32,000 nucleotides of DNA from Wallemia ichthyophaga EXF-994 (Eukaryota; Fungi; Basidiomycota). The position numbers were made by a program, and so were the translations under genes. The notes under the pieces are model-generated. The model saw only the letters and a program-made list of their open reading frames with translations, was not told the origin of the DNA and searched no databases. This document shows, in pieces, positions 1,938 through 29,073 of the stretch. Where the stretch lies: contig NW_008806281.1 of NCBI RefSeq assembly GCF_000400465.1, forward strand, positions 330,001 through 362,000, given 5' to 3'. The stretch's first letter is position 1, and each line of letters begins with the position of its first letter.

Positions 1938-4373
1938 ATGAGCAACAGTAAAAACCCAATTGAATTTGATAAAATAATTAATTCGAATAAAACCAAATTT
2001 ATAAACGAGCAATTGAGATCTGGGCTGTCTGACGATACACCTGAATCTACAACTACTTGTACACCTACTCAACACCCCACTACCACGCCTCGTCGTCGTA
2101 AACCACCCTCCCCGATAAAGATATTCCAAAACAATCTCAGCCTCGAGAAAGTCGGTATACCCACTTCACCCGCTTTTAATCATAATTGGTGCGAAAATGA
2201 TAACGCACTCTCTCCTTCCACCTCTATGCCCTCTCCTCAGCCTTCCCCTCAACCTTCCCCTAGAATTTCGTCTTTGGCTTTCTCTAGGGAAAATAGGGAT
2301 TCTAGCATGAACACCATCACTCCAAAGGTTTCAAATAGAGACGTCGATCACCTCCCTCCTTTACCCCCTTCTCCTACCGATATTGGCATGCTTTGCTTCA
2401 ATCAAGACGAATCATTCCTCCCTAAACACAAACACGCTCAATACCTTGGATCCCCTTCCCCTTTCAATAAAGACGCGTTAATGTCTTACATGTCTCAGTT
2501 CGACTTCTCCAATCTACGCCTGGATAATGCTCTCAGGAAACTTACCTCCAAATTGTTCCTACGCGCTGAATCTCAGCAGATTGATCGCATCTTAGAATCT
2601 TTTTCCTTTAAATTTTTCAGCGATAACCCTTCTTCAGTATACCGCAACCCAGACATCGTACACGCTATATCCTACTCTATTCTACTCCTTAACACTGACT
2701 TACACATTGCAGATATTGCTACTCATATGTCTAGAAACCAATTCCTAAAAAACACTCTCAATGTTATACACAACCAGTGCGATAACTTTAAGGACCTTGA
2801 TGCTGATGACTCCTCTTCTATTAGCTCTTCTACTAATGATAACTCCACATCAACCCATCAACCACCTCCTCTATCTTACTACTCGAGAAAAAGTAATATT
2901 GCTCGCAACGGTAGCTTATCCTCCATCAAGTCCAACCTCTCTCCTCCTTCTTCTTCCTCTTTCTCCGATGACAAGGTTAAAAAGAGCTCTTCTTCCATTA
3001 CTATCAACCAAAGCTATCATCTTCATCAGCTAGATTCCGACTTAGAACCTTTACTGCGAGAAATTTACAACAGCGTCCGCTTACACAAAATACTACTTCC
3101 TTTAGACTCTACCACTGCTGGTAATCTCTCTGCCAGTAATCATCGCAAAAAAAATACTAATAACAGACAAAGACTACCTAGGAATATGTCCTCTACTTCC
3201 ATGAGCGCTTCTTCTCTAAAGCGTGGTAGTATACGCGGTCTGTCTAGTCTTCTTGGAAATGAAGGTCGATCATCGCCTACTTGTTCTTTGGGTTCGGTAA
3301 TGGAGGTGAGTTGATGGTTAACAACTGCTTCTTGAAACCCACTTACAACCCAATCACAGAAACCTGCTCCTTCTATCGGTTTTGCTTCAAATCTCTCACA
3401 AACTATCATAAAAGAACAACATGAAGAATCAAACTCACTCAAATCATCTCCATCAGAAATAACTTTGGCCGAATTAACACTCAAAGATGAAGAATTAGCT
3501 TTGATGGGTCCTCCTTGGGCTAAAGAGGGATTTTTACAGCGCAAACACTACTATGAATCTCAAAATAAGCGTTCAAAAGACCGCAATTGGCTAGAAGTCT
3601 TTGTCGTGATATCTAAAGGTTATCTGAAAATGTTTACTTTTGGTGACACTGCTGGTGTACAAGGTGCTCAATCTAATGGTGGTGTAGGTGGTGGTAATTG
3701 GACTAATAACGCTAATTTAGTGGAAGATGTTCCGCTAGCACATTCCATTTCTGATATAATGAAACCTGGCTATAATAGATCACGGCCTTATTGCTTTCAA
3801 CTTATATTGCCTAATGGAGGTAAATATTACTTACAAACAGGTACAGAATCTTTATTAGAAGAGTGGGTATCAACATGCAATTATTGGGCATCACGATCTT
3901 CTAAGGAGCCTTTGAGTGGTGGCATTTCAAATATGGAGTATGGATGGAATACAACGTTGAGTGAGATTGAGCAGGGTACATCTTCAACCCATCTCAAGCC
4001 ACAGAAGGAAGAAGATGGGAGTAGTGTAAAGTCAAACTACTCTTTCAATAGATGGAAGCAAACATTTCGTACTAATGCAGATAGAACGTTTATTGAAGAA
4101 TGGAATTCTCCTCATTTACCTGTTGTTTCTTCCAGCCTAGCCGAGGAAGATCAAAGAAAGGCTCTTGAAAAGTGTAATAACAACTTGAAGAAAGAACTAC
4201 GTATACACCGACAAGTTTACGACAAAATGTTACAAAATTACTCAATCAAATCATCCAATCGCGATAAGGCGGTTAATAATTGGAATAAGAAGACAAAATA
4301 TTTAACAAATGAGATGAAAAAGTATGAAAGGTATATAGAGGAGTTGTCAAAGGCGATAAGTATGCGTAAGTAA
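1938..4373 (+). CDS. Sec7-domain + PH-domain Arf guanine nucleotide exchange factor (Syt1/Yel1/EFA6-like); intron 3306-3359
   Basis: Sec7 motifs FDFSNLRLDNALRKL..ESQQIDRILESFS..YSILLLNTDLH; PH-like KEGFLQRKHYYESQNKR..W and WVSTCNYWASRSSKEPLSGGISNMEYGW. GTGAGT..CAG intron joins the two ORFs in frame (SVME|KPAPSIGFASNLSQTII). Confidence 0.9.
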
Positions 4374-4702: not shown

Positions 4703-7700
4703 ATGTCAATTAATAACGACAATAAGTGTGGCAGCAGTGGAAATAGCAGCATCAGTAGCAAAAACATCGAAAACAACAATACCACCAACAATACACTCTC
4801 ACGCTTACAACAAGCTTTCAAGAATCAAGAAGAAGCAATGAGAGCAAATCCGAAATTCAGACTACCACCTGCGCCTGGTGATATTTCCAATAGGAAACCA
4901 TCTGAATTATCCCTAACAGCTCCTAAGTTTGGTCAAATATCTGGACTTTTAAGCAGAGAGGAGGGGAATGACGATTTTGACTTTAATTTTAATCCATTAT
5001 CTGCAGAATTGAATACACCAATCAGTTTGAGTGATATTGCAAACTCAGAGTCGACTAGCTCAACTTTAAATAATCCTTCAACGTCTACTTCATTATCAAC
5101 TCATAATGACGCAGGTGTTACCTCTAATGATGCTCTAATTAACACTGGTGATAGTTCTAGTACCTCCAATCACACCACTATACCACAATCTCATAAATCC
5201 CCCAACAAAGTCGTCTCAGATATTCTAAACGACGACTTACTCGATCGAAAGTTAGCCACAAGAAAACATTACATTCTTCCATCTTCCCCTCTCTCCCCCT
5301 CCACTCCCACTCAAATCGACGAAACTGTCGATCATGACTCAAAGGATGACCCCATCGCTTCTCAAGTTTGGAAATTATACGCTAAACACAAATCTTCTAT
5401 CCCAAACGCTCAAAGAATGGAAAATTTGTCTTGGAGAATGATGATGATGTCTTTAAGAAGAAAGAAACATTCTGAGTCAAATCATTCTCTTAAAGATAAA
5501 ATTGATTCACCCCCCACACAAGATTCAGCTGATTTTGATAATAGAAGCGATCACTCTTCACCAACCCCTGAAGCTCAACCTGCCACTCAAGTAACCACAA
5601 ATACTGTTCAAGAAAATCTTGTAGACGCTATCAACTCTACAAAAATTCCTCTGCCTGATGAAGATGATCAGGAAGATGAGGAAGACGAGCGTGGTAGAAA
5701 ACCTCGCAGACATCGTGCTCCAAGGAAGCAAACAAACGTCGTCGTCGGTTTCGCTGGCAAAGTCCCTGAAGGTCTTGATAATGGTGAAGCTATTGTTGAC
5801 GATTTGATGGATTGGAGGGGCAAATCTAGATCTAGGTCACGCTCCGTTATGGACTGGAGAGGTCAATCAAGGTCCCGTTCTAGGCCTCCTCAAAATCATC
5901 AAAGCACAAACCCTTCAAAGAGTTATTTCATCCCCAGTCTACCTACACACACTCCTTCTCCAGATACGGCTAACAATGCGGATGCCTGTGAATCTACTCC
6001 TGATCATCAAAAGCTCCACCAAAATCTTCCTTCACGTATTAAAAATGAATTGACAACTACAATTGAAGAAGATAGTATTGGAAATGATCACTTTTACCAC
6101 TTTGGCACTGCTTCATCCTTACCAGACCCACAGTTCTTTTTACATCATGCTCAACAAAACAACACTAACCGTGCAAACGATCCTCAACAAAATTTTTACG
6201 ATCTTTTGAGTGATAATAAAGATATAGAAGACCTTTTAAAAGGCAAGCCCGCTCAGCAGTCACAGTATACTCCTTCTCCTAGTTTGTTGTCCAAATCTCT
6301 CTCTTCCAGTTACGAATACAGACCTGAAATTCATAATGTACCAGTGAGTGCGAAAAAAATTCTAAAAGCTCCCATTGACACTAGTTGAGGTGGCTCGTAA
6401 GCGTCCTGCTGAATATTCTCCAAAATTTACCACATTATTCAACAACATAGGAAACGGTCAATCAGATCCACCTCCTTTCAGCCTTACCAGCTCTTTCATG
6501 CCTCACCATAATAAAACTGACAACCATGAATCTGGCGTTAATACTGAAGGATCACTCAGCCCAGATGGAATAGATCTGAATGAGAAGAGCTTGGTCTTAC
6601 CTGATGGATTCCCAGACGATGGTGGTTTATCTGCACTGTTATCTCAGAGTGCCCCTGGCGATTCATACGGTGTATTTCCTCCAACAATACCGCAAGGACT
6701 ACCAACATACCAGGAGTATGCTCCAGCGAATAAGGACAACGAGGACTATCAAAATCAACAATCAGGTGATCAAGATTGGAATAACTTATTCAGCTTGCTG
6801 TATGGTACAAATTCCGCCCCATCCACTCCATCCTTGACGGATTCAATGAATTCGTTCGCAGCAAACATCAACCCAGCTAGTTTATTTAACAAGAAGAACA
6901 GGGAAGTGAAACCGATGCGCACATCCAATTCTAGTCAGTCTTCTAGTAAATATGCCTCTCAATCTCCTCAACTGCCAACTCAACCCACCCCCAAATTGAA
7001 GTCGTCTTTTAACATTCAATCTAAACCACATCCCATTAAATCACAAGAGCAGAACCATAAGAGCAACAACGTCTTATCTACCAGTGTACCATCCATACCA
7101 ATAACGAAGACAGGAACACAATCAGGAGGTCAATCTCAACAGCGTTCATCTTATGTACCATTACGCCAAGCACCGGTTAAGCAACCTAGTAATCCTAATT
7201 CCACTGCATCTCACAGTGACGTCAACTTGATAACAGATATCCAAAGCGCGAATGCTATGACTTGCTACAACTGCAAGACTACGAAAACACCCTTGTGGAG
7301 ACGAGATCCAGATGGCAACTCACTCTGTAATGCCTGCGGGCTTTTCCTAAAGCTGCATGGTGTAGTTCGACCACTAAGTCTCAAATCTGACGTCATAAAG
7401 AAGAGAAACAGAAATGGAGCTGGCTCGAATAATCCAAAAACAGTGGGTAAGAAGGGTGCTAAGGAGGGTACCCAGAGAGAATCACAAGCACCTTCTTCAT
7501 CTGATGTAAACTCTCACGCAAGCACCAATTCAAACCAGGACAATTACGCAGAATCAAGTCCCGCTTTGCTTCCATTCATGGGTCTGCCACCACAACCAGT
7601 CGTCAATACTAAGAAGAGGCGGACTAGCGCTGTTCAACAGCAGCAGTTTGAGCAACTCGAAGAGAAGCAGATTGAGAGTTCTGTTGGATATCTCAGTATC

Positions 7701-7715
7701 GATCGGTCAGTTTAG
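4703..7715 (+). CDS. areA: AreA/Nit2/Gat1-type GATA zinc-finger nitrogen regulator; one short intron near 6344-6389
   Basis: N-terminal DUF1752-like motif [27 protein letters not shown]; RKRPAEYSP motif; zinc finger [50 protein letters not shown]. The two overlapping ORFs need a splice to join. Confidence 0.88.
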
Positions 7716-8289
7716 CGTGCTTTGATGAGGTATGATTACCTGGATCTCTGTTTTGTTTTGGATATCGTAATTCCTTTCGCTATCATTTCGCTATTACTAT
7801 TTTATCACTTTGTAGGTATTGTCTCGAACATTAAGATATGTCTCACTGCTCGTAGGTATTTCCAACTCCCCCTTTCGCCTCTCATTCAAGCTTTCAATAC
7901 TCTGACTGTGTCTTTATCCGCAGTCTCATTACTCATGTTCTGATTTTACTTGCGATTCACGTGTAATTTTATTTTGACGGTTGTTTTAAAGGTTGAGATA
8001 GGTATTTATATAATTGCCCACGATTATCCTATCTGCGACTCTGCCATGCATCACTAATAACCTTCAGAACAAGGATGAGGTTTATAAAGATGTTTGGAAA
8101 TAATGGTTTTTCCCTCTAGCATGTCTGACAATAACAATCACTTAATGTGATTATATTTGCTCAATCCCGTGCAAATCTCTAGGTAATTGCGAAAATGATC
8201 ACAGCAAAAAAAACAAAGACTTTCTTATAGGCCCAATGTATTTTCTAATATCACGGCGAATTATACATGAAATAGAACCGAAATGCACG

Positions 8290-8580
8290 CACTACTCAAA
8301 AAGTCAAAATGCGTGCATTAGGTCAGCGAGAAATAATTACAGTCGCCTGAGGAAAATCCGTTTGAGCTCTTGCGTTCCAAAATTGATCAGATTATTATGC
8401 AATAATCACCATCAAAATCTAATTACTATTCATAAAATGTGCATCAGGTTAGGTTAAAGATAAATTGAGTCGGAAAAGCATTATGGTTGCGCCTCTTAAA
8501 TTATCTAAAATCAGGACACGTCATGTACTGGTTAGAAACGCAATAAACTCACTTCATGAAGTGCTTGCATTAGGTATTAC
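8290..8580 (+). repeat. Three related degenerate units at exact 126-bp spacing outside the identical IR
   Basis: TGCATTAGGTCAG at 8314, TGCATCAGGTTAG at 8440, TGCATTAGGT at 8566. 8290-8326 vs 9322-9357 = 31/37 with one gap. Confidence 0.7.
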
Positions 8581-9040
8581 GTCAAGGTCTACTGAAAACT
8601 TAGCTTAAAAAATACAGAAAATGCCCAGCACATTTCACTCACAGTTTAAATTTATGTTATACTAGTTTCAAGCAAACGTCATAGATATTACCAAGCTTAT
8701 TAACAAAAAGAAGCACGATGGACGACAATCTCTTTGCTTCTAGATTATTTGCAGGCCCCACGTGCCCCCTCACGTCATAATTTCTGTACATAGCCCTTCC
8801 ACCAGTCTAAACTAATGGACAAAATTCAACAGTTCCCATCTACTGTATTTACACGCCTTTCCTCGTCACGGATATAACATTGATCTCATTAAATCAGTTT
8901 GTTGTATATGCTTTTTCCTTGTACAAGCCATTCCTTTAATCTGCAGCCTGCAACTTACAATATTTGCTAAATTCTTCATTGTGTAATGGAAATAAAATAT
9001 CATGATCCTTTATCGATTGAACTGGAAGAAAAAGGAACGT

Positions 9041-11491
9041 AATTAGTAATAGCTAAGGCTGAGAAAGCATAGAGAACGATAAAGGTAAACACTTGAAAAC
9101 AGAAGAAAAACAAGAACCGAAAGCGATATGCGTATTTCATACTCAAATGTCAAGGTACATCATGCACAAGTTAAGAGTCGAAATGCGATCACTTTTCAGA
9201 ATGCATGATTTAGATGAAGGCAAATGTAAAGTGCCGGAAAAAGAGTTCGTAGATGGAACTATTCTCTTACTTAAGCTTCTAAGATAATTTTAAACTAATT
9301 AAAATCATAATACACCCCACTCACTACTCAAAATGCCAAATGCATGCATTATGTTAGGGTACATTGAGGTGCAATTGAAAAGGAACCCAAGAAAGCCAAA
9401 GTTGTGCCATTATTATGCTGAAAATTAGGAAAACATTACGCACTAATTAGAGTCACAATCAACCTACTATTCAAATTCCACAATACGTGCATTAGGTTAG
9501 CTTACCATTTACCTAAACCCTGTGTCCTCAGTGAGCCTTTCAAGTTCGTCAGCTTGTTGTACAGCACAACCCTGCCGATGTCCTTTCAACCAGCATAACG
9601 TCCATACGGAAAATGGGTTGAAAGTTTCGTATTTCCATCTTAATACGCCGCTAAAGTAGCAGCAGGTGACCTGATATCAAATATGTTTCGGCCTGTCGTC
9701 TTCTAAAAAGCCAGAAATCACTTTTTTCCCTAATCAGGATCGTGATTCACCCAATACTTTGCCTACTGACATGCACTAGGTCAGGTAACTTTTAGGGGAA
9801 AATGAAAAGTGACTCCATAATCCATCTCTTTGGTCTTTCAAACTCTAAAAAGTTCACGAATGAATAGGCATCACATCAAATGGCGATCCCTTCCCCCCAA
9901 CCCATCTCACCTAACAGCACGCACAAAGACTGGCTACTTTTAGGGGAAGCTGAAAAGCCGTACAGTATGGTGCTCTTTTGGAACTGTGGTATTTTTAAAT
10001 TCAGTAATCATTACGCAATATTCAGGATGACAATCCCCTACTTTTCATCATGCCAGAACTTGAGCACTAGGATGTCATAAGGGAAGTCATATTTATACTC
10101 AACAATTATTCATTCGTTCCTGACTAGCCCTATATGGTTTATAATGTTTTGTGAGCTGAGCGTTATCGCTTGGCTGAAGCTTGTTCATGATCGAAAGGTG
10201 GTACTGTCAAACTATTAGACAAAGCCGTGATAATATATCGTTAAAGTTTCTGTTCACAAATCAATATGTCTCATCAGTACTTAACACGTCGCTGGTGTAT
10301 GTTAACAACTGAGTTGATGACGGAAGTAGGGAATATGTCTTATCAGAGTTTAATATGTCAGTTAAAGTAATGCGATCGTTACAACCTCATTCCTGTTACT
10401 ATCTCATTACGATTTCAATAGGCTCGAGCCACATAATGACTCAGCCTTTCTTGCGTGAAAAGCTTCCTAATTGTGATTAAAGGGTAACTATAGAATCAAA
10501 AGAAGAGCAGAAATTTTCATCATTAATAGCTGTCTAAGTTTGCAGAATTGTATATTAGACTTTCATTGTTAACTTAAGGTTATTAATCACTTTGGCAGTC
10601 GGAGCCCTACCCTTTCGAATTTGATGAAAATAATCGAGTTTACTGGCTAGCTATACCACTAAACTAGAATTATTGACTATCATTATTCAATTTAAATTGA
10701 TGCCAGATGCGACCTTTTCCTAATTGTGCCTAAGGACACCACCCCTGATGACGTACATGACCCTTTTAACTGGCATTTGGCCCCTAACTATTTGAGAAGT
10801 GCTCATTTGTAAATGTTAATGGTGTCTCAAAAATGCTTTACAACGCCGGATAATCAGAAACCGTAAAGAAGAAGGAGTCACTGTTTAAAATCAAAGAAGA
10901 CAAAGGATTTAAACAATAAGAAAGCTCAGTGATTACTTTTGTTAAGCTAATTAATCAGTTGATGACCAATAGAGAAGTCAGTGGTATTTAGCAAATTCAA
11001 AGAGAAGGTCATAAATCACGAAGCTTTCCTGATAAAATAATCATCGCGAAATAACTTTGTTTCTAATCATTTCACTATGATTTTTCTTTGCATAGTCTTT
11101 TTATATCTTAAGAGCTCTTTAAGCAGCCAATTTCTCAATAATTTATTATATTTTTGTTACAATCATTAAAAATAACGTAACTTTTATTCTTTACAAGGGT
11201 GTTTGACATTAAACGACAGAGATTATCGTAACCAATGTCACTGAAAAGTTTCCTGTGTATCGTGTGTTATAGGAAGTTTTCAAGACATTAACGTCAATGA
11301 TTTTGATAATAGATCAGATTTTACCACTAACCCTTCACATATCAAATATAAATTAATTGTAAAAATTACGCAAAGTATTGCTTCATCTACAAAATTCAAG
11401 GCCATTGTTGACATTATTGTTTAATTACCGTCAAATTGTCACTAAGTCCTACATCGACATTTTACTGGTCGTTTGCATTGCAATCGATTTT
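9041..11491 (+). repeat. Left arm of giant inverted repeat (2451 bp)
   Basis: Block-by-block comparison: position p pairs with 23511-p. Identical to the reverse complement of 12020-14470 except at 10944, 10966, 10973 and 10981. The mirrored ORFs in the track (9093-9287/14224-14418; 9880-10080/13431-13631) give the same coordinate sum. Confidence 0.99.
9200..10100 (+). repeat. Degenerate ~143-148-bp tandem units in the outer left arm (mirrored at ~13410-14310)
   Basis: TGCAYTAKGTYAG at 9345, 9488 and 9772 (spacing 143 and 2x142). 9345-9382 vs 9772-9809 = 28/38 ungapped. 9788-9809 vs 9936-9957 = 20/22, 148 bp apart. Confidence 0.75.
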
Positions 11492-12019
11492 CTGAGCTGA
11501 TTAAGCTTATAAATGCAAAAGAGTAAATAGAATTTCGCGACAGCAGAGTAATCTCGATCCGTCCTGACGAAACCAAGCTTTCGAGAAATCGATGAAAGAT
11601 ATGTTTATATTCTTGCTTCAAATTGTAGAAAACGGACAAGAAAACAGAAGGTCATGGGACACGGATACATACTTTTACAATTTAACGTGGTGAAAACAAT
11701 CTAATATGATACTTTTTTTTTCTTATTTGAGATTGACAGCGAAGCTCATATAGTGTTGATTCAATTTAAACGACAAAGTTCGGTAAAATATTCTTTTCAG
11801 GGCATGCAATTATTTATTTATCATTACCTTAGTACAACAATAACAAGATTGAAAAGTACGACTTCAAATCTTGTACTGAATTTTGCATTGATGAAAAAGT
11901 TCTTCATGATGTAAGTTTGTCGACTCAAATTAAAATCAAAATGTGATGCACTTGTCGTTTATTCGTAGAAATTCTGATTTCTTTTCATTTTATTTATGCA
12001 TAAGCTTTTGTCAGCTTAA
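11492..12019. other. 528-bp AT-rich spacer/central core of the inverted repeat
   Basis: Sequence between the identical arms; spot-checked 60-nt lines are 27-28% GC; no credible ORF. Confidence 0.9.
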
Positions 12020-14470
12020 AAAATCGATTGCAATGCAAACGACCAGTAAAATGTCGATGTAGGACTTAGTGACAATTTGACGGTAATTAAACAATAATGT
12101 CAACAATGGCCTTGAATTTTGTAGATGAAGCAATACTTTGCGTAATTTTTACAATTAATTTATATTTGATATGTGAAGGGTTAGTGGTAAAATCTGATCT
12201 ATTATCAAAATCATTGACGTTAATGTCTTGAAAACTTCCTATAACACACGATACACAGGAAACTTTTCAGTGACATTGGTTACGATAATCTCTGTCGTTT
12301 AATGTCAAACACCCTTGTAAAGAATAAAAGTTACGTTATTTTTAATGATTGTAACAAAAATATAATAAATTATTGAGAAATTGGCTGCTTAAAGAGCTCT
12401 TAAGATATAAAAAGACTATGCAAAGAAAAATCATAGTGAAATGATTAGAAACAAAGTTATTTCGCGATGATTATTTTATCAGGAAAGCTTCGTGATTTAT
12501 GACCTTCTCTTTGAATTTGCTAAATACCATTGACTTCCCTATTGATCATCAACTGATTAATTAGCTAAACAAAAGTAATCACTGAGCTTTCTTATTGTTT
12601 AAATCCTTTGTCTTCTTTGATTTTAAACAGTGACTCCTTCTTCTTTACGGTTTCTGATTATCCGGCGTTGTAAAGCATTTTTGAGACACCATTAACATTT
12701 ACAAATGAGCACTTCTCAAATAGTTAGGGGCCAAATGCCAGTTAAAAGGGTCATGTACGTCATCAGGGGTGGTGTCCTTAGGCACAATTAGGAAAAGGTC
12801 GCATCTGGCATCAATTTAAATTGAATAATGATAGTCAATAATTCTAGTTTAGTGGTATAGCTAGCCAGTAAACTCGATTATTTTCATCAAATTCGAAAGG
12901 GTAGGGCTCCGACTGCCAAAGTGATTAATAACCTTAAGTTAACAATGAAAGTCTAATATACAATTCTGCAAACTTAGACAGCTATTAATGATGAAAATTT
13001 CTGCTCTTCTTTTGATTCTATAGTTACCCTTTAATCACAATTAGGAAGCTTTTCACGCAAGAAAGGCTGAGTCATTATGTGGCTCGAGCCTATTGAAATC
13101 GTAATGAGATAGTAACAGGAATGAGGTTGTAACGATCGCATTACTTTAACTGACATATTAAACTCTGATAAGACATATTCCCTACTTCCGTCATCAACTC
13201 AGTTGTTAACATACACCAGCGACGTGTTAAGTACTGATGAGACATATTGATTTGTGAACAGAAACTTTAACGATATATTATCACGGCTTTGTCTAATAGT
13301 TTGACAGTACCACCTTTCGATCATGAACAAGCTTCAGCCAAGCGATAACGCTCAGCTCACAAAACATTATAAACCATATAGGGCTAGTCAGGAACGAATG
13401 AATAATTGTTGAGTATAAATATGACTTCCCTTATGACATCCTAGTGCTCAAGTTCTGGCATGATGAAAAGTAGGGGATTGTCATCCTGAATATTGCGTAA
13501 TGATTACTGAATTTAAAAATACCACAGTTCCAAAAGAGCACCATACTGTACGGCTTTTCAGCTTCCCCTAAAAGTAGCCAGTCTTTGTGCGTGCTGTTAG
13601 GTGAGATGGGTTGGGGGGAAGGGATCGCCATTTGATGTGATGCCTATTCATTCGTGAACTTTTTAGAGTTTGAAAGACCAAAGAGATGGATTATGGAGTC
13701 ACTTTTCATTTTCCCCTAAAAGTTACCTGACCTAGTGCATGTCAGTAGGCAAAGTATTGGGTGAATCACGATCCTGATTAGGGAAAAAAGTGATTTCTGG
13801 CTTTTTAGAAGACGACAGGCCGAAACATATTTGATATCAGGTCACCTGCTGCTACTTTAGCGGCGTATTAAGATGGAAATACGAAACTTTCAACCCATTT
13901 TCCGTATGGACGTTATGCTGGTTGAAAGGACATCGGCAGGGTTGTGCTGTACAACAAGCTGACGAACTTGAAAGGCTCACTGAGGACACAGGGTTTAGGT
14001 AAATGGTAAGCTAACCTAATGCACGTATTGTGGAATTTGAATAGTAGGTTGATTGTGACTCTAATTAGTGCGTAATGTTTTCCTAATTTTCAGCATAATA
14101 ATGGCACAACTTTGGCTTTCTTGGGTTCCTTTTCAATTGCACCTCAATGTACCCTAACATAATGCATGCATTTGGCATTTTGAGTAGTGAGTGGGGTGTA
14201 TTATGATTTTAATTAGTTTAAAATTATCTTAGAAGCTTAAGTAAGAGAATAGTTCCATCTACGAACTCTTTTTCCGGCACTTTACATTTGCCTTCATCTA
14301 AATCATGCATTCTGAAAAGTGATCGCATTTCGACTCTTAACTTGTGCATGATGTACCTTGACATTTGAGTATGAAATACGCATATCGCTTTCGGTTCTTG
14401 TTTTTCTTCTGTTTTCAAGTGTTTACCTTTATCGTTCTCTATGCTTTCTCAGCCTTAGCTATTACTAATT
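12020..14470 (-). repeat. Right arm of giant inverted repeat (2451 bp)
   Basis: Reverse complement of 9041-11491 with 4 mismatches (12567, 12545, 12538, 12530). Confidence 0.99.
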
Positions 14471-15069
14471 CAATAATATATCTATGACTTTTGCTTGCAA
14501 TTCGTAAAACGTACACACCAACAAAGCGAGCAGTGGTAATAAATAGGGCTACATATTGTTTTCACAAGTACTTGTTTTTCTTGACGTTGATATGTTATCA
14601 AGTCTCCTGAACCGCAAATTGGCGTCTTTGGATCTTCTCGACTAGAATAGCATTTTCAAAGAGAGAAAAGTCTTCTAGTCAGTAAAGTTAAAAAGATGTG
14701 CACTCTTGTATCATTCAGCTGTAAAACTCGAAAGTATGCATAATCAGACCGGTGTATTTACCATGCATAATCCTCGAGTTGAGCCTCAAATTGTTTGTGA
14801 ATGATTGCAGGTTACACTAAATTAATTGACTGTATATTTTTTAAGGTTGTAAGTAATCAACTGCTGCCCACTTTTAACGCTTTGAACCATCAGCTCCTCG
14901 AAGCTCACGTCGGCTTCGATTGAAACTGAACCGCCCTCCTAGAGGATAATGACCACAGCACAGGTATCCCTTCACGTTAAAATATAAATCCAAAGGCGAT
15001 TCAATGACTAGTGTACATGTGCAAATTTGGGAAATGCAATATTGATATGCAAGGCAATCGAAGGTATGC

Positions 15070-16858
15070 TCAAAGCATATATCTAAATCCACGCTTGACA
15101 AGTAGAGAGTAATCTATTTTGCGATCAAACTTCTCTGGTACGTCCCATGGGTCGACACCTGGGTACTCCTCTTCCAGCTTTTCTATCTTCTTGTTGATAT
15201 CCTTCAGTATGTATCTAAAGCCTAGGATCGCAAAGCAAGAAAATCCGGTGCAGCTAAGGCAAATTGCGTATGACTGTCTGTAACCGTCCGGGCCGAATTT
15301 GTCTGCATCCCATATGTAGCTACCAGCGATATTACCAATATTGGAGAAAGCATTAACAAAGGCTATGGCAACTGAACGTCTCGATGTCGGGCGAATAAAT
15401 GAGCTTGCAGTGAATGCATAAACGCATATGAAACCACAGTAGCCCAGAGTCATCAAAAACAAGGCAACATACCTAGCGGCCTGGTTTGTAGTTGCCAAAG
15501 CAATTATGAATCCAGCGATGGATATCAGGTTTGAAACTAAAATGTGGAATGTACGCTCTTGGCATCTGTCAGAGTTAACTGACCAAGGGAAAGCGACTAA
15601 AGTTGCGAAGATCCATGGCGGTGCGCACATTAAAAGAGCTCTAGTACCCTCAAATCCCATGTTTTTCGTAAGAGTGGGGAAATAGATGTTGAAACTCAAA
15701 CCTATGACCATACCTGTGAGTGTTAAGGCCAACCACCAGACTTTGTAGTCAGATAAGGCCATTTTCATACCCTCGAGCACCTCTTTCTTTCCACCGACTG
15801 AATCCACCTTTCCAGCATCTTCAGCCATACGACGGATAGCTAGTTTTCTCTGAGAAGGCTATTAACTTAACGTTCATGAAAGGCCAACTGTCTTACCTCC
15901 AATGGTGATAAGAATCTCTCAGTTTCGGGAAAATCCGGTAAAATAAAAACTGAGCAAACAGCAACAAATATTGTAAGCGCGCCTCTGGGGAGACGTAAGC
16001 AAAATTTGGGAAGAATAAATTTTCTCACTCAATGTAAAACAGCCACCTGGTAAATTTTGTAAGTTGATGTAATCTCTATTGAATCTGCTTACCTCCAAGC
16101 TCTATGTCCTAGTTTGCCTTCCATTCCATTGACAATACCAGCGGCTATGAGGTTACCGAAGGCATTTGATATGAGATTACCACAGTAAAGTAAAGTCATT
16201 CTGACACCCAGCTCGTTCTTTTTGTACCATTTAGATAGCAAGAACATGGCACCCGGTAAGAAAGCAGCCTCAATGAAGCCAAGGAAAAACCTTGTCATCA
16301 GAATACCAACATAGTTCTCCGTAATACCAGTGAGTACACTGATCGTTCCCCATATACTCATGGCAGCGCCTATATAAAGCGATGGTCGATTGATGATTGA
16401 GATCAAACCGTTGGAGGGAATTCTAAACAAAGTGAGCTGTGATTATAAGAGGGTAGAAAGAGAAGCTTACTGCATAAGGATGTAGCCTACGTAAAGAATG
16501 CTGATGACAGTTTCGTATCTCTGACCAACGCCAAGTTCCAAGTCCTTTTGCAATCCTTGATAGCGTGCAGCAGGCACGTTGTTTCTGTCAATGTAATTGA
16601 GAATGTAGACTAGAAATCTACTATCAATGATGGTTAATGTAACGTCGAAGCTGACTTACTGATAATCATAATGCTCATCCTCAAATCTGTCTTAAAAACA
16701 AGTTTTCGCTCCATCTTTTTCCTGTTTTCATAGCCACCGAACTCGTCGTCATCGTTGTTGTAAGTTTCTAAATCAACAGTCGTCCCATTACCGGTGTCTG
16801 GTGCTGCTTCGTGCTCCTCGAGCTCGTTCTTAAAGTCTTTGTTTTCCTCGATATTCAT
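15070..16858 (-). CDS. MFS transporter, anion:cation symporter family (Dal5/Tna1-like allantoate/nicotinate permease); about 5 introns
   Basis: Spliced translation gives IYILNYIDRNNVPAARYQGLQKDLEL..ILYVGYILMQIPSN, TRFFLGFIEAAFLPGAMFLLSKWY, WRWLFYIEGALT..ILPDFPE. Canonical GTAAG/GTGAG donors. Confidence 0.9.
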
Positions 16859-17456: not shown

Positions 17457-20400
17457 ATGGAGGCCTACGTACAAAATCTCCATAGTCTGCTTGAGCAGAC
17501 AGTCGCGCCAGATACACAGATTATCAAGAATGCTACGGCGACATTAAACGCACAATACTACAAAGCACCTGAGTGCATTCCAGGGCTATTCGAGGTAGTA
17601 GCGTCAAGCCCAATGGATCCAGTCAGGCAATTGGCTGCCGTTGAGCTGCGTAAGAGAGTCAGTAATTCTAATGGTAATCTTTGGAAGAATTGCCCTCAAG
17701 AAATCAGAACTTCAATCAAATCTCGTTTGCTTGAAGTAATTCTGGTTGAGCACAGGTGCGTTAATTAAATCAATTTAGATTTATTCTTACAAGATTTAAG
17801 TAATCTTGTTCGTCACTCATGCGCTCGTGTCATCTCTGCAATCGCTGAGATCGAACTACCATTAAACACTTGGCCAGATCTTTTAAGCTACCTCACACAA
17901 GCTTCTACTTCACCAAACTCTGCGCACCGTGAGATTGGTATTTTTGTTCTCTACGCCCTCCTCGAAACTATCATCGAAGGTTTTGAAAGTCACCTGCCTT
18001 CTCTCTTCGCTCTCTTCGCAAAAAGCATATCAGACCCTGAGAGTTTGGAGGTTAGAGTCACAACCCTCAAAGCCTTAGGAAAGGTCGCTGAGTACATTGA
18101 TATCGATGATAAGAACGATATTGTGAGTTTTGAGTATTCAGATTCACTTTTCTAACAAACCATCAGAAAACCTTCCAAAGTCTTATTGAGCCAATGGTTA
18201 TCGTCCTCCAACAAGCCTTGGAAGCCGGTCAAGAGGACTCCGTAAAAGCTGGTTTTGACGTTTTCGAAACAATGTTGATCATAGTACGTGAAATCACACC
18301 GTTCAAAGTTCATTTTTGACGCTCGAATCAGGAAGCACCACTCCTTTCAAAGGCTATACCAGACCTCGTTCAATTTTTCTTAACTTCAGCCTCAAATTCA
18401 AACTACGAAGACTCACTTAGAGTTATGTGTCTTAACTGCTTGCTCTGGACTGTCAAATACAAGAAATCTAAGATTCAGTCCCTTGGTCTTGCCAAGCCAA
18501 TCTTGGAGCGCTTGCTTCCAATCGGTGCTGAAGAAGATCCAGAAGACATTGATGAAGATTCACCTTCTAGATTATCTTTCCGTGTTTTAGACACTTTAGC
18601 AACATCTTTACCACCATCGCAAGTGTTCCCTCCTCTTTACCAACAATTACGTGAATACATGAATTCCCCACAAGCACCACTACGTAAATCAGCAATGATG
18701 GCCTTCGGTGTCACCGTGGAAGGATGCTCAGAGTTCATTAGACCTCACATTGATGAGCTTTGGCCATTCATCGACGCTGGTTTGCAAGATGGCGAACCAA
18801 TAGTCCGCAAGGCTGCTTGTGTGGCTTTGGGTTGTATTTGTGACATGTTGGGTGATGAAGCTGCGGAGAGACACGGTGTGTTGCTCCCATTAGTTTTCAA
18901 CCTTATGAACGATGAAGCAACTCAACGTCCAGCCTGTACCGCACTTGATGCCCTTTTGGAAGTTCTTGGAGAGGACATCAACCAGTACCTTCCAATGCTC
19001 ATGGAGAGATTAGTTGGATTGCTGTCGACAGCCCCACTAGCAGTTAAGAGTACAGTTACTGGTGCAATTGGTTCAGCCGCTCACGCTGCCAAGACTCAAT
19101 TCGTACCCTACTTCGCACAAACAATTCAATTGATCCTTCCGTTCCTCAACTTGACGGAAGAGGGTGAAGAAATGGATCTCAGGGGTGTAACAATGGATGC
19201 TGTTGGTACAATCGCCGAAGCAGTCGGACCAGAAGTATTCAGACCTGTCTTCCAAGAAATCATGCAGCAAGCATATGCAGGAATGAACATTGATTCACCA
19301 CGCTTGCGTGAATGTTCTTTCATCTTCTTCACCGTCATGACTAGAGTCTTCGGAGAAGAATTCTCACCATTCCTTGGTGATGTTGTACCAGCTCTTTTGC
19401 GCAGCTTGGGTCAAGACGAAACCGATGATATGGAAGGTGGTGGTGGTGATGGATTGTTCGATGCTGGCGAAGAAAACGTCGAAGATATTGATCCAGAAAG
19501 AATGCTATCAGTAAATAGTGCAATGGCAATCGAGAAAGAGGTAGCTGCAGATGCAATTGGTGAAATTTTTATCAATACCAAGTCAAATTTCCTGCCATTC
19601 GTAGAGGAGTCTGTTGGAAAATTGATTGATCAACTCGAACATTACTACGAAGGTATTAGAAAGAGTGCACTTTCAAGTTTATTTGCTTTCATGTCAGCAT
19701 TCTATGAAATATCTTCACCAGCGCAATGGCAAGCAGGCATTGCTACATCATATCATGAAAATGTTGAAAAGTTGATCGAGCTTGTTTTACCTGCAATCTT
19801 TGATACTTGGGCACAAGAAGATGATAAGCAAGTTGTAACAACGATTGTACAAGAACTTGCTGAAACTCTCAACAAGATGGGACCATCCTTGATTTTAAGA
19901 GATGGCCGCGTTGAAAACGTCTGTAACTCAACCGCTGAGATTTTGAACGGCAAGTCACTTTGTCAACAAGATCCAGATCAGGATGACGAACTAGAGGAGG
20001 ATGTTGAAAATGCAGAGTATGAGTCAGTACTAATTCAAGCCGCTGGAGACTTAGTTGGTGCATTGGCGACATCAATTGGACAACAATTCTCTGGACCATT
20101 TGGAACATTTTTGCCATTAATTGCCAAATTCTACGGAAAGGGTAGAGCCGTCGGTGAAAGATCATCAGTGATTGGAACCATAGGAGAGATTATCGTTGGA
20201 TTGAAGTCTGGTATTACACCACACACAGAAAATTTACTCAAGTTAATCTTAACTGCACTTTCAGACGAAGAAGCAGAAGTAAGATCTAATGCAGCATTTG
20301 CAACTGGTGTGTTAGTTGAGAACACTGAATTAGACCTCTCAGGTCAATACATGATGATACTATCGTCACTGAAACCGTTGTTTGATGTTGGACATGAGGC

Positions 20401-20767
20401 ACCAAGCCCAGTTTTGAATGCCCGTGATAATGCAGCCGGTGCTACATCAAGAATGATTATAAAAAACGGATCAGCTATGCCATTGGATCAGGTGTTATCA
20501 GTATTAATCAGTGTTCTGCCATTAAGGAACGACTTATTAGAGAATGGCCCAGTTTTCAGAGCTATCTTCACGTTGTTTAGAACTAATGCAAATTTAATAA
20601 TGCCAGAGTTGCCAAATTTGTTGGCTGTTTTCAAGCACGTTCTTGATCCATCATTGCCTGAACAAATCAGTCAAGAGGTCAGATTAGAATTGGTGGAGCT
20701 TATTAAGGCAATCAATCAGCAAACACCGGAACAAGTTGCTCAAGCTGGATTGAATGCTTACATTTAG
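17457..20767 (+). CDS. KAP123: Importin-4 / Kap123 (importin-beta family, HEAT repeats); several short introns in the 5' part
   Basis: IBN_N motif VRQLAAVELRKRV; HEAT-repeat body including LRECSFIFF, IAMEKEV-like AIEKEVAADAIGEIF, EVRSNAAFATG, ARDNAAGATSRMI. Confidence 0.88.
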
Positions 20768-26747: not shown

Positions 26748-27616
26748 ATGGTGGAATTCGATTTTAGTAATTTTAACAGGTTAGACTTGAAATTTGACAG
26801 TTAATAAAATAAATCTATTGACCTCTCTATAGAAATAACTCATTGGCTTCAAATAATCAAGCTAATCTACCAAAAGCAACTTCAACTGGTACAACTATCG
26901 TTGGTTGCATTTACAAGGATGGTTTAGTTTTAGGCGCTGATACAAGAGCAACTGAAGGTGAAATCATCGCTGATAAAAACTGTGAAAAGATCCACTACTT
27001 GACAGATAATATTCGCTGTTGTGGCGCAGGCACTGCTGCAGATACAGAAGCTGTTACAGCATTGATATCTTCAAACCTGGAATTACACTCTTTATCCACA
27101 GGAAGAAGTCCAAGAGTTGTAACCGCAATGACAATGTTGAAACAAATGTTATTCCAATACCAAGGTCATATAGGTGCAGCTTTAGTTTTAGGTGGAATAG
27201 ATTCTACAGGTCCTAATCTATTCACCGTTGCACCACATGGATCAACAGATAAATTACCTTATGTTACGATGGGTTCAGGCTCATTAGCAGCAATGGCAGT
27301 ATTCGAATCAACATGGAAACCAAACTTAACACAAGACGAAGCAAAGAATTTAGTAATCAAAGCAATCTCAGCAGGTATCTTTAACGATTTAGGTTCAGGT
27401 TCAAATTGTGATGTTTGCGTAATTGAGAAGGATCAACCAACTCAATTATATAGAAATATTGCACCAGAGTTGAATGCAAGATCACAAAAGGAGAACAATT
27501 ACAAGTTCAGAAGGGGTACAACGGCTGTTAAGAAGGAATTTATCAGAAATCTTATTGATGAAGAGGAAGTTGTTGAGATTGGTCAAGGTGGTGATAGTAT
27601 GGATGTTAGTAGCTAA
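26748..27616 (+). CDS. PUP1: 20S proteasome subunit beta2; short first exon from 26748, intron ~26780-26832
   Basis: Propeptide [11 protein letters not shown]|[19 protein letters not shown] followed by catalytic TTIVG; [37 protein letters not shown]. Confidence 0.95.
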
Positions 27617-27713
27617 TAGCAACTAATTTTTAGCTAATTTTGAGTTGATGTACTGAAATGAAAGAATGAATTAAAATTGTTTTATCTAATCTATTACACC
27701 AACTGTCATCATC

Positions 27714-29073
27714 ATGGTATCGAGTAAGCAAGAATTGGAAGGAATGTTAATGCTTGAAAAACCTTTGATTAGAGTTAGTTTTGTTAAATGCTATATTGGC
27801 CACTCTAATACACGCAAATTCAGTCACCTTTAGAGAAATTACGTAAATCTTTCAGAAACATTCAAAAGCACTTGGATAAAGATTTGAATTTGATTTCTAA
27901 TAGTCTGAAGAATGATTTATCAGTAAATGATATTGATAAATTGATTTCGAAAGCTCATTCACTCAAATTAAAGGTATCGAGTTACGGCTATTATACCGAT
28001 TGCAGCACACTCACAAAACACAGCTGATTCAATTAGAATCTATACAATCAAACGATTACAATCAGCTTAAATTCAGATGCTTGCATATTAAATCTACTCT
28101 GTTAGATGGTTATCATCACAATGATAATAACCTAATTGAGGAATTCAAGGATATTAGAATTCAAAGGTGGATTGTTGATTGGTGTCTAAGAAATAACAAC
28201 AAATCCGTTGCAAATCTTCTGATTGACAAATCTAACATTCATTTCCTCATCGATAACGACTTAACTGATCAAATTACTAAAATTGAGTCAGATTTGTTGA
28301 ATTTCTCTTGCGATTCAGCTTTAGCCTGGTGTAATGAGAACAAGCTGAACCTCCGCAAACTTAGTATTCAATTCGAATTCGATTTAAGGTTACAACAGTA
28401 CATTGAAATCGTCAGACAAGGCAACATTCAATCAGCAATCTCTTACTTAAGGCATCATCTTATATCTCACTTTTCTACTCACTCCAAGCAAATTCAACAA
28501 GCTGTCGCTCTGTTAGCATTTCCTGAATCTTCCATTGTTGGCGTTTATCGTAATTTATATAACAAATCTAGATGGTCAGACTTGAGTCTACAATTTAAAG
28601 CTGTCGCTTTACATTTATACGGTTTAAGTACTCAACCTATGCTACATGTCGCTCTCAGCGTTGGTCTACCCTCACTTAAATTACAATGTTGCTCAATTGC
28701 TCAAGATTCCTCTCAAGTTGATAATCATGTCAACGAATTTGAACACCTTTACAATGATTCAACTTTCCTTTCGACGAAGAGTGAGAGACTCCTCGACAAC
28801 CACTCCACCAACTGTCCTACTTGTGACCCTGAGTTACTAGGTGCATTGGCTCAACAAGTTCCACACTCACATCACACTAACTCTTCAATCGTTTGTAAGA
28901 TTTCTGGAAAAGTCGTCAAAGACGGTGAAATGCTCGCTTTCCCTAATGGCAGAGTTTACTCTAAATCTGCTTTACATGATATGGCTCAAAACGATGCTCA
29001 AAATATGGTCAAATGTCCGCGAGATGGTACAATAGTCCACTACAGCAAACTACGCAAGGTCTTTGTTTCATGA
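27714..29073 (+). CDS. FYV10: GID/CTLH E3 ligase subunit Fyv10/Gid9/MAEA; two short 5' introns
   Basis: N-terminal LMLEKPLIR|SPLEKLRKSFR; CTLH/CRA ALAWCNENK..EFDLRLQQYIEIVR; C-terminal degenerate RING HSHHTNSSIVCKISG..PNGRVYS..VKCPRDG. Confidence 0.88.

Follow-up and report, generated by a model that had tools for sequence, protein, structure and literature searches.

What does a nearly perfect inverted repeat (IR), 5.4 kb in overall span, do between two genes of a highly compact fungal genome? The question is raised by a window of 32,000 nucleotides (nt), the whole stretch of DNA analysed here, from the Wallemia ichthyophaga EXF-994 reference assembly GCA_000400465.1. Position 1 of the window is position 330001 of the 482,636-bp scaffold KE007231.1; over the 23311 nt compared, the window shows 0 mismatches to that scaffold and no N. 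The IR lies in a gene-free interval between the annotated genes for an areA-type nitrogen regulator and an MFS transporter. An initial annotation, made from the letters alone, proposed that it was a centromere and took the DNA to come from a basidiomycete-like fungus, the latter correctly. Wallemiomycetes branch off early next to Agaricomycotina, and their genome is among the smallest in fungi.

Here we describe the structure of this repeat, its presence in other strains, the joint evolution of its two arms and the fate of the locus in related lineages. On the combined analysis we regard the IR-core-IR interval at 7716-15069 as a well-supported candidate for the centromere of this chromosome, small and regional and similar to those of Komagataella phaffii, a reading that we place at an even balance between belief and doubt.

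Results

Anatomy of the inverted repeat

A repeat search and a base-by-base mirror comparison delimit a 2460-nt IR, with arms at 9041-11500 and 12011-14470 around a 510-nt spacer at 11501-12010. The two arms mismatch at 6 of 2460 nt. The parts of the element are as follows:

9041..11500, plus strand: left arm, from the repeat search and mirror comparison; GC content 37.9% over the outer 1.86 kb, 30.0% over the inner 0.6 kb
11501..12010, no strand: unique core (spacer), 510 nt, GC 31.0%, itself non-palindromic
12011..14470, minus strand: right arm, 99.76% identical to the left arm
10901..12610, no strand: AT-rich zone centred on the core, 1710 nt, GC 30.1%

In left-arm coordinates the mismatches lie at 10944, 10966, 10973 and 10981, a cluster of simple substitutions, and at 11492 and 11494, adjoining the inner edge. 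When the arms are trimmed before these last two, the arrangement first described from the sequence (2 x 2451 nt with four differences around a 528-nt core) is reproduced exactly. Outer and inner boundaries are both sharp, mirror identity just beyond them being at the random level, and a chance origin of the IR is excluded by its length, with one 32-mer from it expected 0.00 times in shuffles.

Of the six differences between the arms, four fall within 38 bp (10944-10981), ~1.9 kb from the outer edge. This cluster could be a patch that escapes gene conversion, or else a gap-closing artefact of an assembly that relied on a 2-kb library. The possibility that the spacer is a decayed perfect palindrome was considered and rejected (local score 25 against 19.6 +/- 2.5 in shuffles, with a maximum of 30; not significant). 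The spacer ends, 11501-11545 and 11966-12010, have a weak mirrored similarity (AAGCTTAT... then AAATG.AAAAG..AAAT.AGAATTTC), also not significant against shuffles, which could represent a decayed inner extension of the IR.

The sole internal structure of the gene-free interval is a degenerate module of ~200 bp in direct orientation, with three copies in the outer half of each arm (9302-9515, 9735-9830 and 9885-10050, mirrored in the right arm) and one in the left flank (8270-8470). Copies are 60-65% identical to one another and are marked by the motifs ATGCATGCATTAGGTCAGG, CTTTTAGGGGAAAATGAAAAG and ATCATTACGCAATAATCAG; no copy of the module was found in the other loci fetched.

The repeat in independent strain assemblies

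The reference is a short-read assembly of 2013, built by SOAPdenovo (K=21) on libraries of 500 bp and 2 kb, so that no read pair spans the 2.46-kb repeat internally. IDBA-Hybrid assemblies with k up to 120 exist for a further 21 W. ichthyophaga strains (Gostincar et al. 2019). We compared six of these 21 assemblies (SPNZ, SPOK, SPNX, SPOE, SPOR and SPOF), whose evidence concerns the MFS-side outer edge of the right arm; for the opposite junction, a search with areA brought up no W. ichthyophaga record. In SPNZ, SPOK, SPNX, SPOE and SPOR, the contig with the MFS and importin genes breaks off within the right arm, exactly 119 nt (k-1) past its outer edge; in SPOF it ends 251 nt inside. Contigs that end k-1 nt past the same outer arm edge imply that the arm is present more than once, and because one and the same arm end is joined to two distinct unique flanks, on the areA side and on the MFS side, there must be two copies in inverted orientation. 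The IR is evidently real and common to all six strains examined. Its outer boundary beside the MFS gene is common to the reference and these six strains, and its position is thus stable within the species.

These contig ends bear directly on the suspicion of an assembly artefact, by which the arm would be single-copy or the inverted layout would have been invented by the scaffolding or gap closing of 2013. Such a suspicion is not idle, given that SOAPdenovo at K=21 had to work with libraries unable to span the arm, and that the clustered differences, ~1.9 kb from the outer edge, lie near the reach of the 2-kb library, where two-sided gap filling might meet. Yet six independent IDBA-Hybrid assemblies break inside the arm at the MFS side, as only a repeated arm would lead one to expect, the abutment of the outer arm end on two different unique flanks forces two inverted copies, and the region contains no Ns. 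We therefore consider an artefact of this kind very improbable.

Concerted evolution of the arms

The SPOF contig reaches far enough into the arm for a comparison between strains (SPOF01000026.1 nt 1-251 against window 14219-14470). Its flank is 99.05% identical to the reference, and its arm differs at 6 of the 251 readable positions, through five substitutions and one 1-nt deletion. The reference's own left and right arms show 0 differences over the same 251-nt stretch. Since the IR has the same boundary in SPOF and in the reference, the duplication must be older than their split; arms that evolved independently should then differ at least as much as the strains do, and that they differ less points to homogenisation.

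The distribution of variants within strains leads in the same direction. The last 119 nt of the SPOF contig, common to both arms, carry three variants, and a single arm-specific variant, the deletion ~132 nt in, accounts for the 132 nt by which this contig extends further. SPOE has a T-to-G change at window 14391, inside the shared 119 nt. These cases indicate that variants within a strain are common to both arms, which evidently evolve in concert, presumably by gene conversion or recombination between them. The ongoing arm-to-arm homogenisation postulated in the initial annotation is in this way supported by 6/251 differences between strains against none between the reference arms. Between strains the arm also diverges more (2.4%) than the 16.5 kb next to it (0.95%), which would suit non-coding DNA that is either unconstrained or fast-evolving.

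Searches for genes, RNAs and mobile elements

No open reading frame (ORF) of at least 70 amino acids (aa) is present in the arms or the spacer, and no Pfam domain was detected in any of the six frames of 7716-12100 with stops masked. A query of 1548 aa, in which arm and core frames of at least 38 aa were concatenated, found no homologue among 5.8 billion proteins; arm and core ORFs looked up as exact sequences, like the 5' ORF of areA, gave no record. ARAGORN found no tRNA, and Rfam yielded no family even at E <= 1. Reverse transcriptase, integrase and gag gave neither a Pfam match in six frames nor a protein homologue, and the locus does not in this respect resemble the retrotransposon-rich centromeres of Cryptococcus type.

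Tandem repeats and subrepeat arrays were not found in the arms, and there is no target-site duplication at the IR ends, where the flanks (...AGGAACGT / arm and arm / CAATAATA...) share no duplicated sequence. Further copies of the arm were seen neither in the window nor in ~250 kb of related loci, and an arm 26-mer was not found in the JGI metagenome contigs. With no ORF of at least 70 aa, no Pfam or protein match and no target-site duplication in or at the IR, these results agree with the original description of the arms as non-coding and of the element as transposon-free. An insertion of mitochondrial DNA, rDNA and a subtelomere were each considered and rejected: neither organellar nor rRNA signals turned up, and the interval lies 339 kb and 138 kb from the two scaffold ends.

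The same searches weigh on the idea that a non-autonomous DNA transposon of foldback type, whose terminal inverted repeats would be very long, has inserted itself between areA and the MFS gene. The element does consist entirely of terminal inverted repeat and a short middle with no coding capacity, and RepeatMasker assigned 85 kb of the genome to DNA-transposon sequence (Zajc et al. 2013). However, the locus lacks a target-site duplication, arm subrepeat arrays and any transposase remnant, a second copy is absent from the window and from the ~250 kb of related loci, and no presence/absence polymorphism exists among the six strains. An insertion would moreover leave unexplained the extra 1.9 kb of non-coding flank and the gene desert of a sister lineage that is described below. 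A foldback origin seems to us quite improbable.

Base composition

GC content is 36.0% and 35.9% in the two arms, 31.0% in the spacer and 41.0% in the window outside the gene-free interval. It declines from 46% at 9501-9700 to 26-31% across 10901-12500, so that the drop toward the core noted at the outset holds approximately, and the lowest-GC 1 kb of the whole window (11601-12600, 29.4%) is situated at the IR centre. The genome mean is 45.35% (Zajc et al. 2013). The window as a whole is GC-poor (39.8%, against that mean and a published mean of 47.5% for coding sequence), so that the neighbourhood of the IR may be GC-depressed more broadly.

Strong GC skews of opposite sign occur at the beginning of the window, +0.24 to +0.44 over 1-2000 and -0.42 to -0.45 over 2001-3000. 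They coincide with low-complexity coding sequence rich in Ser, Pro and Thr, belonging to the 5' end of a Sec7-PH gene and to a further gene on the minus strand. GC skew was not used as a sign of a replication origin, because its profile tracks gene orientation and low-complexity coding sequence.

A gene-free interval of exceptional size

The features that surround the IR are listed here:

4703..7715, plus strand: areA-type GATA nitrogen regulator (Pfam GATA_AreA and GATA), 3' end toward the interval
7716..9040, no strand: left non-coding flank, with no ORF of at least 75 aa and no Pfam match in six-frame translation
14471..15069, no strand: right non-coding flank, from ORF search and annotation
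15070..16858, minus strand: MFS transporter (Pfam MFS_1 and annotated gene), 3' end toward the interval
18425-20767: importin-beta-4 ORF, 100% identical to W. ichthyophaga proteins

Between the annotated areA and MFS genes, 7354 bp (7716-15069) are free of genes. The W. ichthyophaga genome has 9.6 Mb, 4884 genes, 73.6% coding sequence, 0.72 Mb of introns and 1.67% repeats (Zajc et al. 2013), and the mean intergenic spacer works out from the published totals at ~373 bp, as (9.625 - 7.083 - 0.719 Mb)/4884 genes. The interval is ~20 times as long and represents an extreme size outlier. As the flanking genes are convergent on it, the space is needed for no promoter function.

Removal of a 46-nt intron at 6344-6389 from areA yields the 988 aa of the reference annotation. 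At 27128-29073, the 2013 annotation fuses a proteasome beta subunit and a CTLH-domain gene into one product of 508 aa, where the 2019 strain annotations have two, of 271 aa and 402 aa.

The locus in other Wallemia lineages

A sister lineage (Logan SRR25399871), with 95% aa identity in importin and 78-86% nt identity across genes, has a 5966-bp interval free of genes and Pfam matches next to the orthologous MFS gene, on its 3' side. This desert has an AT-rich core of 30-32% GC and is flanked by convergent genes, zf-HIT and MFS. The areA gene of the sister lineage lies 30 kb away on the same contig, with other genes directly after it. The MFS-side border of the desert thus appears to be common to both lineages and the other border to have been rearranged. 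No similarity was found between the W. ichthyophaga interval and the sister desert, or any of the fetched loci, even with 7-nt words; ordinary intergenic DNA is likewise unalignable between these lineages, so this lack of similarity is in itself no guide to the rate of evolution.

In W. mellicola CBS 633.66 the MFS gene is duplicated and adjoins Rad9, with no desert. The segment concerned (JH668223.1:299252-322567) has two tandem MFS genes beside importin and an inverted Rad9-DHODH block on the other side, and several W. mellicola strain contigs end within the MFS pair. In a more distant, AT-rich lineage, the MFS gene has an ARID gene and a 430-aa gene as neighbours, and 2.4 kb lie between areA and the CIP1-like gene that comes next. 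A very AT-rich Wallemia-like lineage with a GC content of 30-32% and 87% aa identity in importin is represented by the 287-kb contig k119_340869 of ENA ERZ27275090 and occurs in many metagenome assemblies (35 index blocks). Synteny is broken at the locus in comparisons with all three other lineages, and the areA/IR/MFS junction is specific to W. ichthyophaga. The synteny check of the areA-MFS interval suggested by the initial annotation has accordingly returned a break in every comparison, together with a gene desert at the MFS border in the sister lineage.

Rearrangement at the locus is also what a functionless inverted duplication would predict, and this is the main rival explanation: palindromic filler at a rearrangement breakpoint, passively homogenised by gene conversion, with the centromere elsewhere. 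It is favoured by the restriction of the junction to W. ichthyophaga, by the different gene neighbours of areA and the zf-HIT border of the desert in the sister lineage, and by the two further lineages in which neither areA nor the MFS gene borders a desert. The divergence between the arms (0.24%) is, besides, no larger than that between strains (0.006-0.95%). On the other hand, 7.35 kb of useless DNA would have been kept in six out of six strains of a genome with ~373-bp spacers and 1.67% repeats. In the sister lineage this MFS border has likewise kept a non-coding stretch of ~6 kb, unrelated in sequence, which argues for selection on the place and not for accident, and an IR that predates the divergence of the strains is not a very recent duplication. 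On balance we find a functionless duplication unlikely, while taking it more seriously than any other competing account.

A third possibility is some other chromatin or RNA element without kinetochore function, such as a hairpin-RNA source of small interfering RNA (siRNA) that nucleates heterochromatin, a replication origin or a fragile site. A perfect hairpin of 2.46 kb would, if transcribed, produce long double-stranded RNA, and the interval is both AT-rich and a rearrangement hotspot. But the neighbouring genes converge on the interval, leaving no promoter evident, and the sister-lineage desert is devoid of any inverted repeat. Elements of this type appear improbable as an explanation of the locus.

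Discussion

A candidate centromere and how it might work

A gene-free, AT-rich interval that is conserved in position and not in sequence, within a streamlined genome, would fit the look of a regional centromere. No other common function known to us would lead one to expect these properties together. Every locally testable prediction of an IR-type centromere, as first proposed for this DNA, is borne out: the interval is gene-free, free of transposon signal, an outlier in size, flanked by convergent genes and centred on a GC minimum, it is shared among strains, its arms evolve in concert, and it has a counterpart in the sister desert and a break in synteny. The initial interpretation is in this sense supported in part; the counterpart in the sister lineage has no repeat.

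If the interval is indeed a centromere, CENP-A nucleosomes and the kinetochore would be expected on the AT-rich core and the inner arms (~10.9-12.6 kb), thinning out along the arms. Intrachromosomal gene conversion or recombination would keep the arms near-identical, and the same recombination could flip the core, by analogy with K. phaffii. Retention of the position by the MFS gene, with the sequence not conserved, would suggest a centromere defined epigenetically or structurally and not by its sequence.

Several observations count against a centromere and temper this picture. The internal layout of the IR, the orientation of its core and the six arm differences come from the short-read assembly only. 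The dip in GC content, ~15 points below the genome mean, is modest beside the ~40 points seen in Malassezia. The sister-lineage desert contains no inverted repeat, so that the repeat may be neither an essential nor a lineage-wide feature. As neither gene has a desert beside it in W. mellicola or in the distant AT-rich lineage, the position is conserved over a short evolutionary distance only. Finally, our observations cover one locus of one chromosome. That W. ichthyophaga chromosomes carry structurally defined, transposon-free IR-core-IR centromeres, of convergent origin in Basidiomycota and with the structure replaced in situ while the location was kept, as the sister lineage would suggest, is for these reasons a broader proposal that we advance tentatively and regard as rather doubtful.

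Were it true, an IR centromere in Wallemiomycetes would mean that a known architecture has appeared in a new phylum, presumably by convergence, and that it evolves time and again. Such a finding would touch on whether CENP-A deposition is specified in part by the repeat or cruciform structure as such. The two sister lineages, one with and one without the repeat at the same position, would make a species pair for studying the turnover of centromere structure, and the 5.4-kb element would provide a handle for stable vectors in an extreme halophile. In the literature searched, neither centromeres nor inverted repeats are described for Wallemia, and no ChIP or Hi-C data turned up for any species of the genus; the assertion that the architecture would be undescribed for this lineage stands.

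Comparison with known centromeres and inverted repeats

Characterised basidiomycete centromeres are either retrotransposon-rich or short and AT-rich without repeats (PMC7025860, PMC11185503). CENP-A-validated centromeres of Kwoniella have a median length of 6.7 kb, a size range into which the gene-free span of W. ichthyophaga falls, and contain retrotransposon remnants (PMC11185503); those of Malassezia have cores of 13-27% GC in genomes of 58-65% and are explicitly without inverted repeats (PMC7025860). The W. ichthyophaga locus is reminiscent of both in being one of the ORF-free or AT-rich regions of 3-8 kb, with GC minima and synteny breaks, that are found in compact basidiomycete genomes (PMC7025860, PMC11185503). 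Unlike them, it combines a large IR with a GC dip of 15 points and no trace of retroelements. A short AT-rich centromere of strictly Malassezia type, with a core of under 1 kb in a deep GC trough and no repeat structure, does not describe it, the GC minimum being ~30% against 45% genome-wide and a large IR being present.

Identical inverted repeats on the kilobase scale also occur at the flip-flop mating-type loci of Ogataea and Komagataella, where they recombine. There, however, the repeats flank 19-138 kb with MAT genes, and here they flank 510 non-coding bases.

IR centromeres have been reported from ascomycetes only, namely Schizosaccharomyces, Komagataella, Pichia, several Candida species and Barnettozyma. 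The imr-cc arrangement of S. pombe, in the summary given in PMC5010909, resembles the present locus in having chromosome-specific inverted repeats around a non-repetitive CENP-A core. The S. pombe domain is ~15 kb, with large heterochromatic otr arrays outside it, and nothing comparable flanks the W. ichthyophaga IR. In C. tropicalis and the C. parapsilosis group, gene-free regions of 5.8-7.1 kb contain an IR around a unique mid region (PMC4741521, PMC7263194). In the C. parapsilosis group, rearrangement breakpoints lie at centromeres, and some relatives lack the repeat at orthologous centromeres (PMC4741521, PMC7263194). The gene-free span, the IR around a unique middle, the synteny breaks and a relative without the repeat at a shared position are all features that the W. 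ichthyophaga locus has in common with this group. The repeats of C. tropicalis and the C. parapsilosis group are 85-97% identical and shared between chromosomes, with mid regions of at least 2-3 kb, whereas the arms described here are 99.8% identical.

The closest likeness is to K. phaffii, whose centromeres consist of a virtually identical IR of ~2-2.7 kb around a unique mid region of ~1 kb and are gene-free, non-transcribed and without transposons (Coughlan et al. 2016, PMC5010909). Their GC content, 37-41%, lies at most a few points below the genome mean of 41%, recombination takes place between their arms, and Cse4 is most enriched on the core, falling off along the arms (PMC5010909). In K. 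phaffii, Cse4 binding, the lack of transcription, the presence of one such structure per chromosome and the flipping of the core have been demonstrated. The core of the candidate W. ichthyophaga centromere is shorter, at 0.5 kb against ~1 kb. Both systems have a near-identical IR on the kilobase scale, a short unique core, homogenised arms, and neither genes nor transposons. Given that W. ichthyophaga belongs to another phylum (Basidiomycota, Wallemiomycetes), this likeness would be a convergent one.

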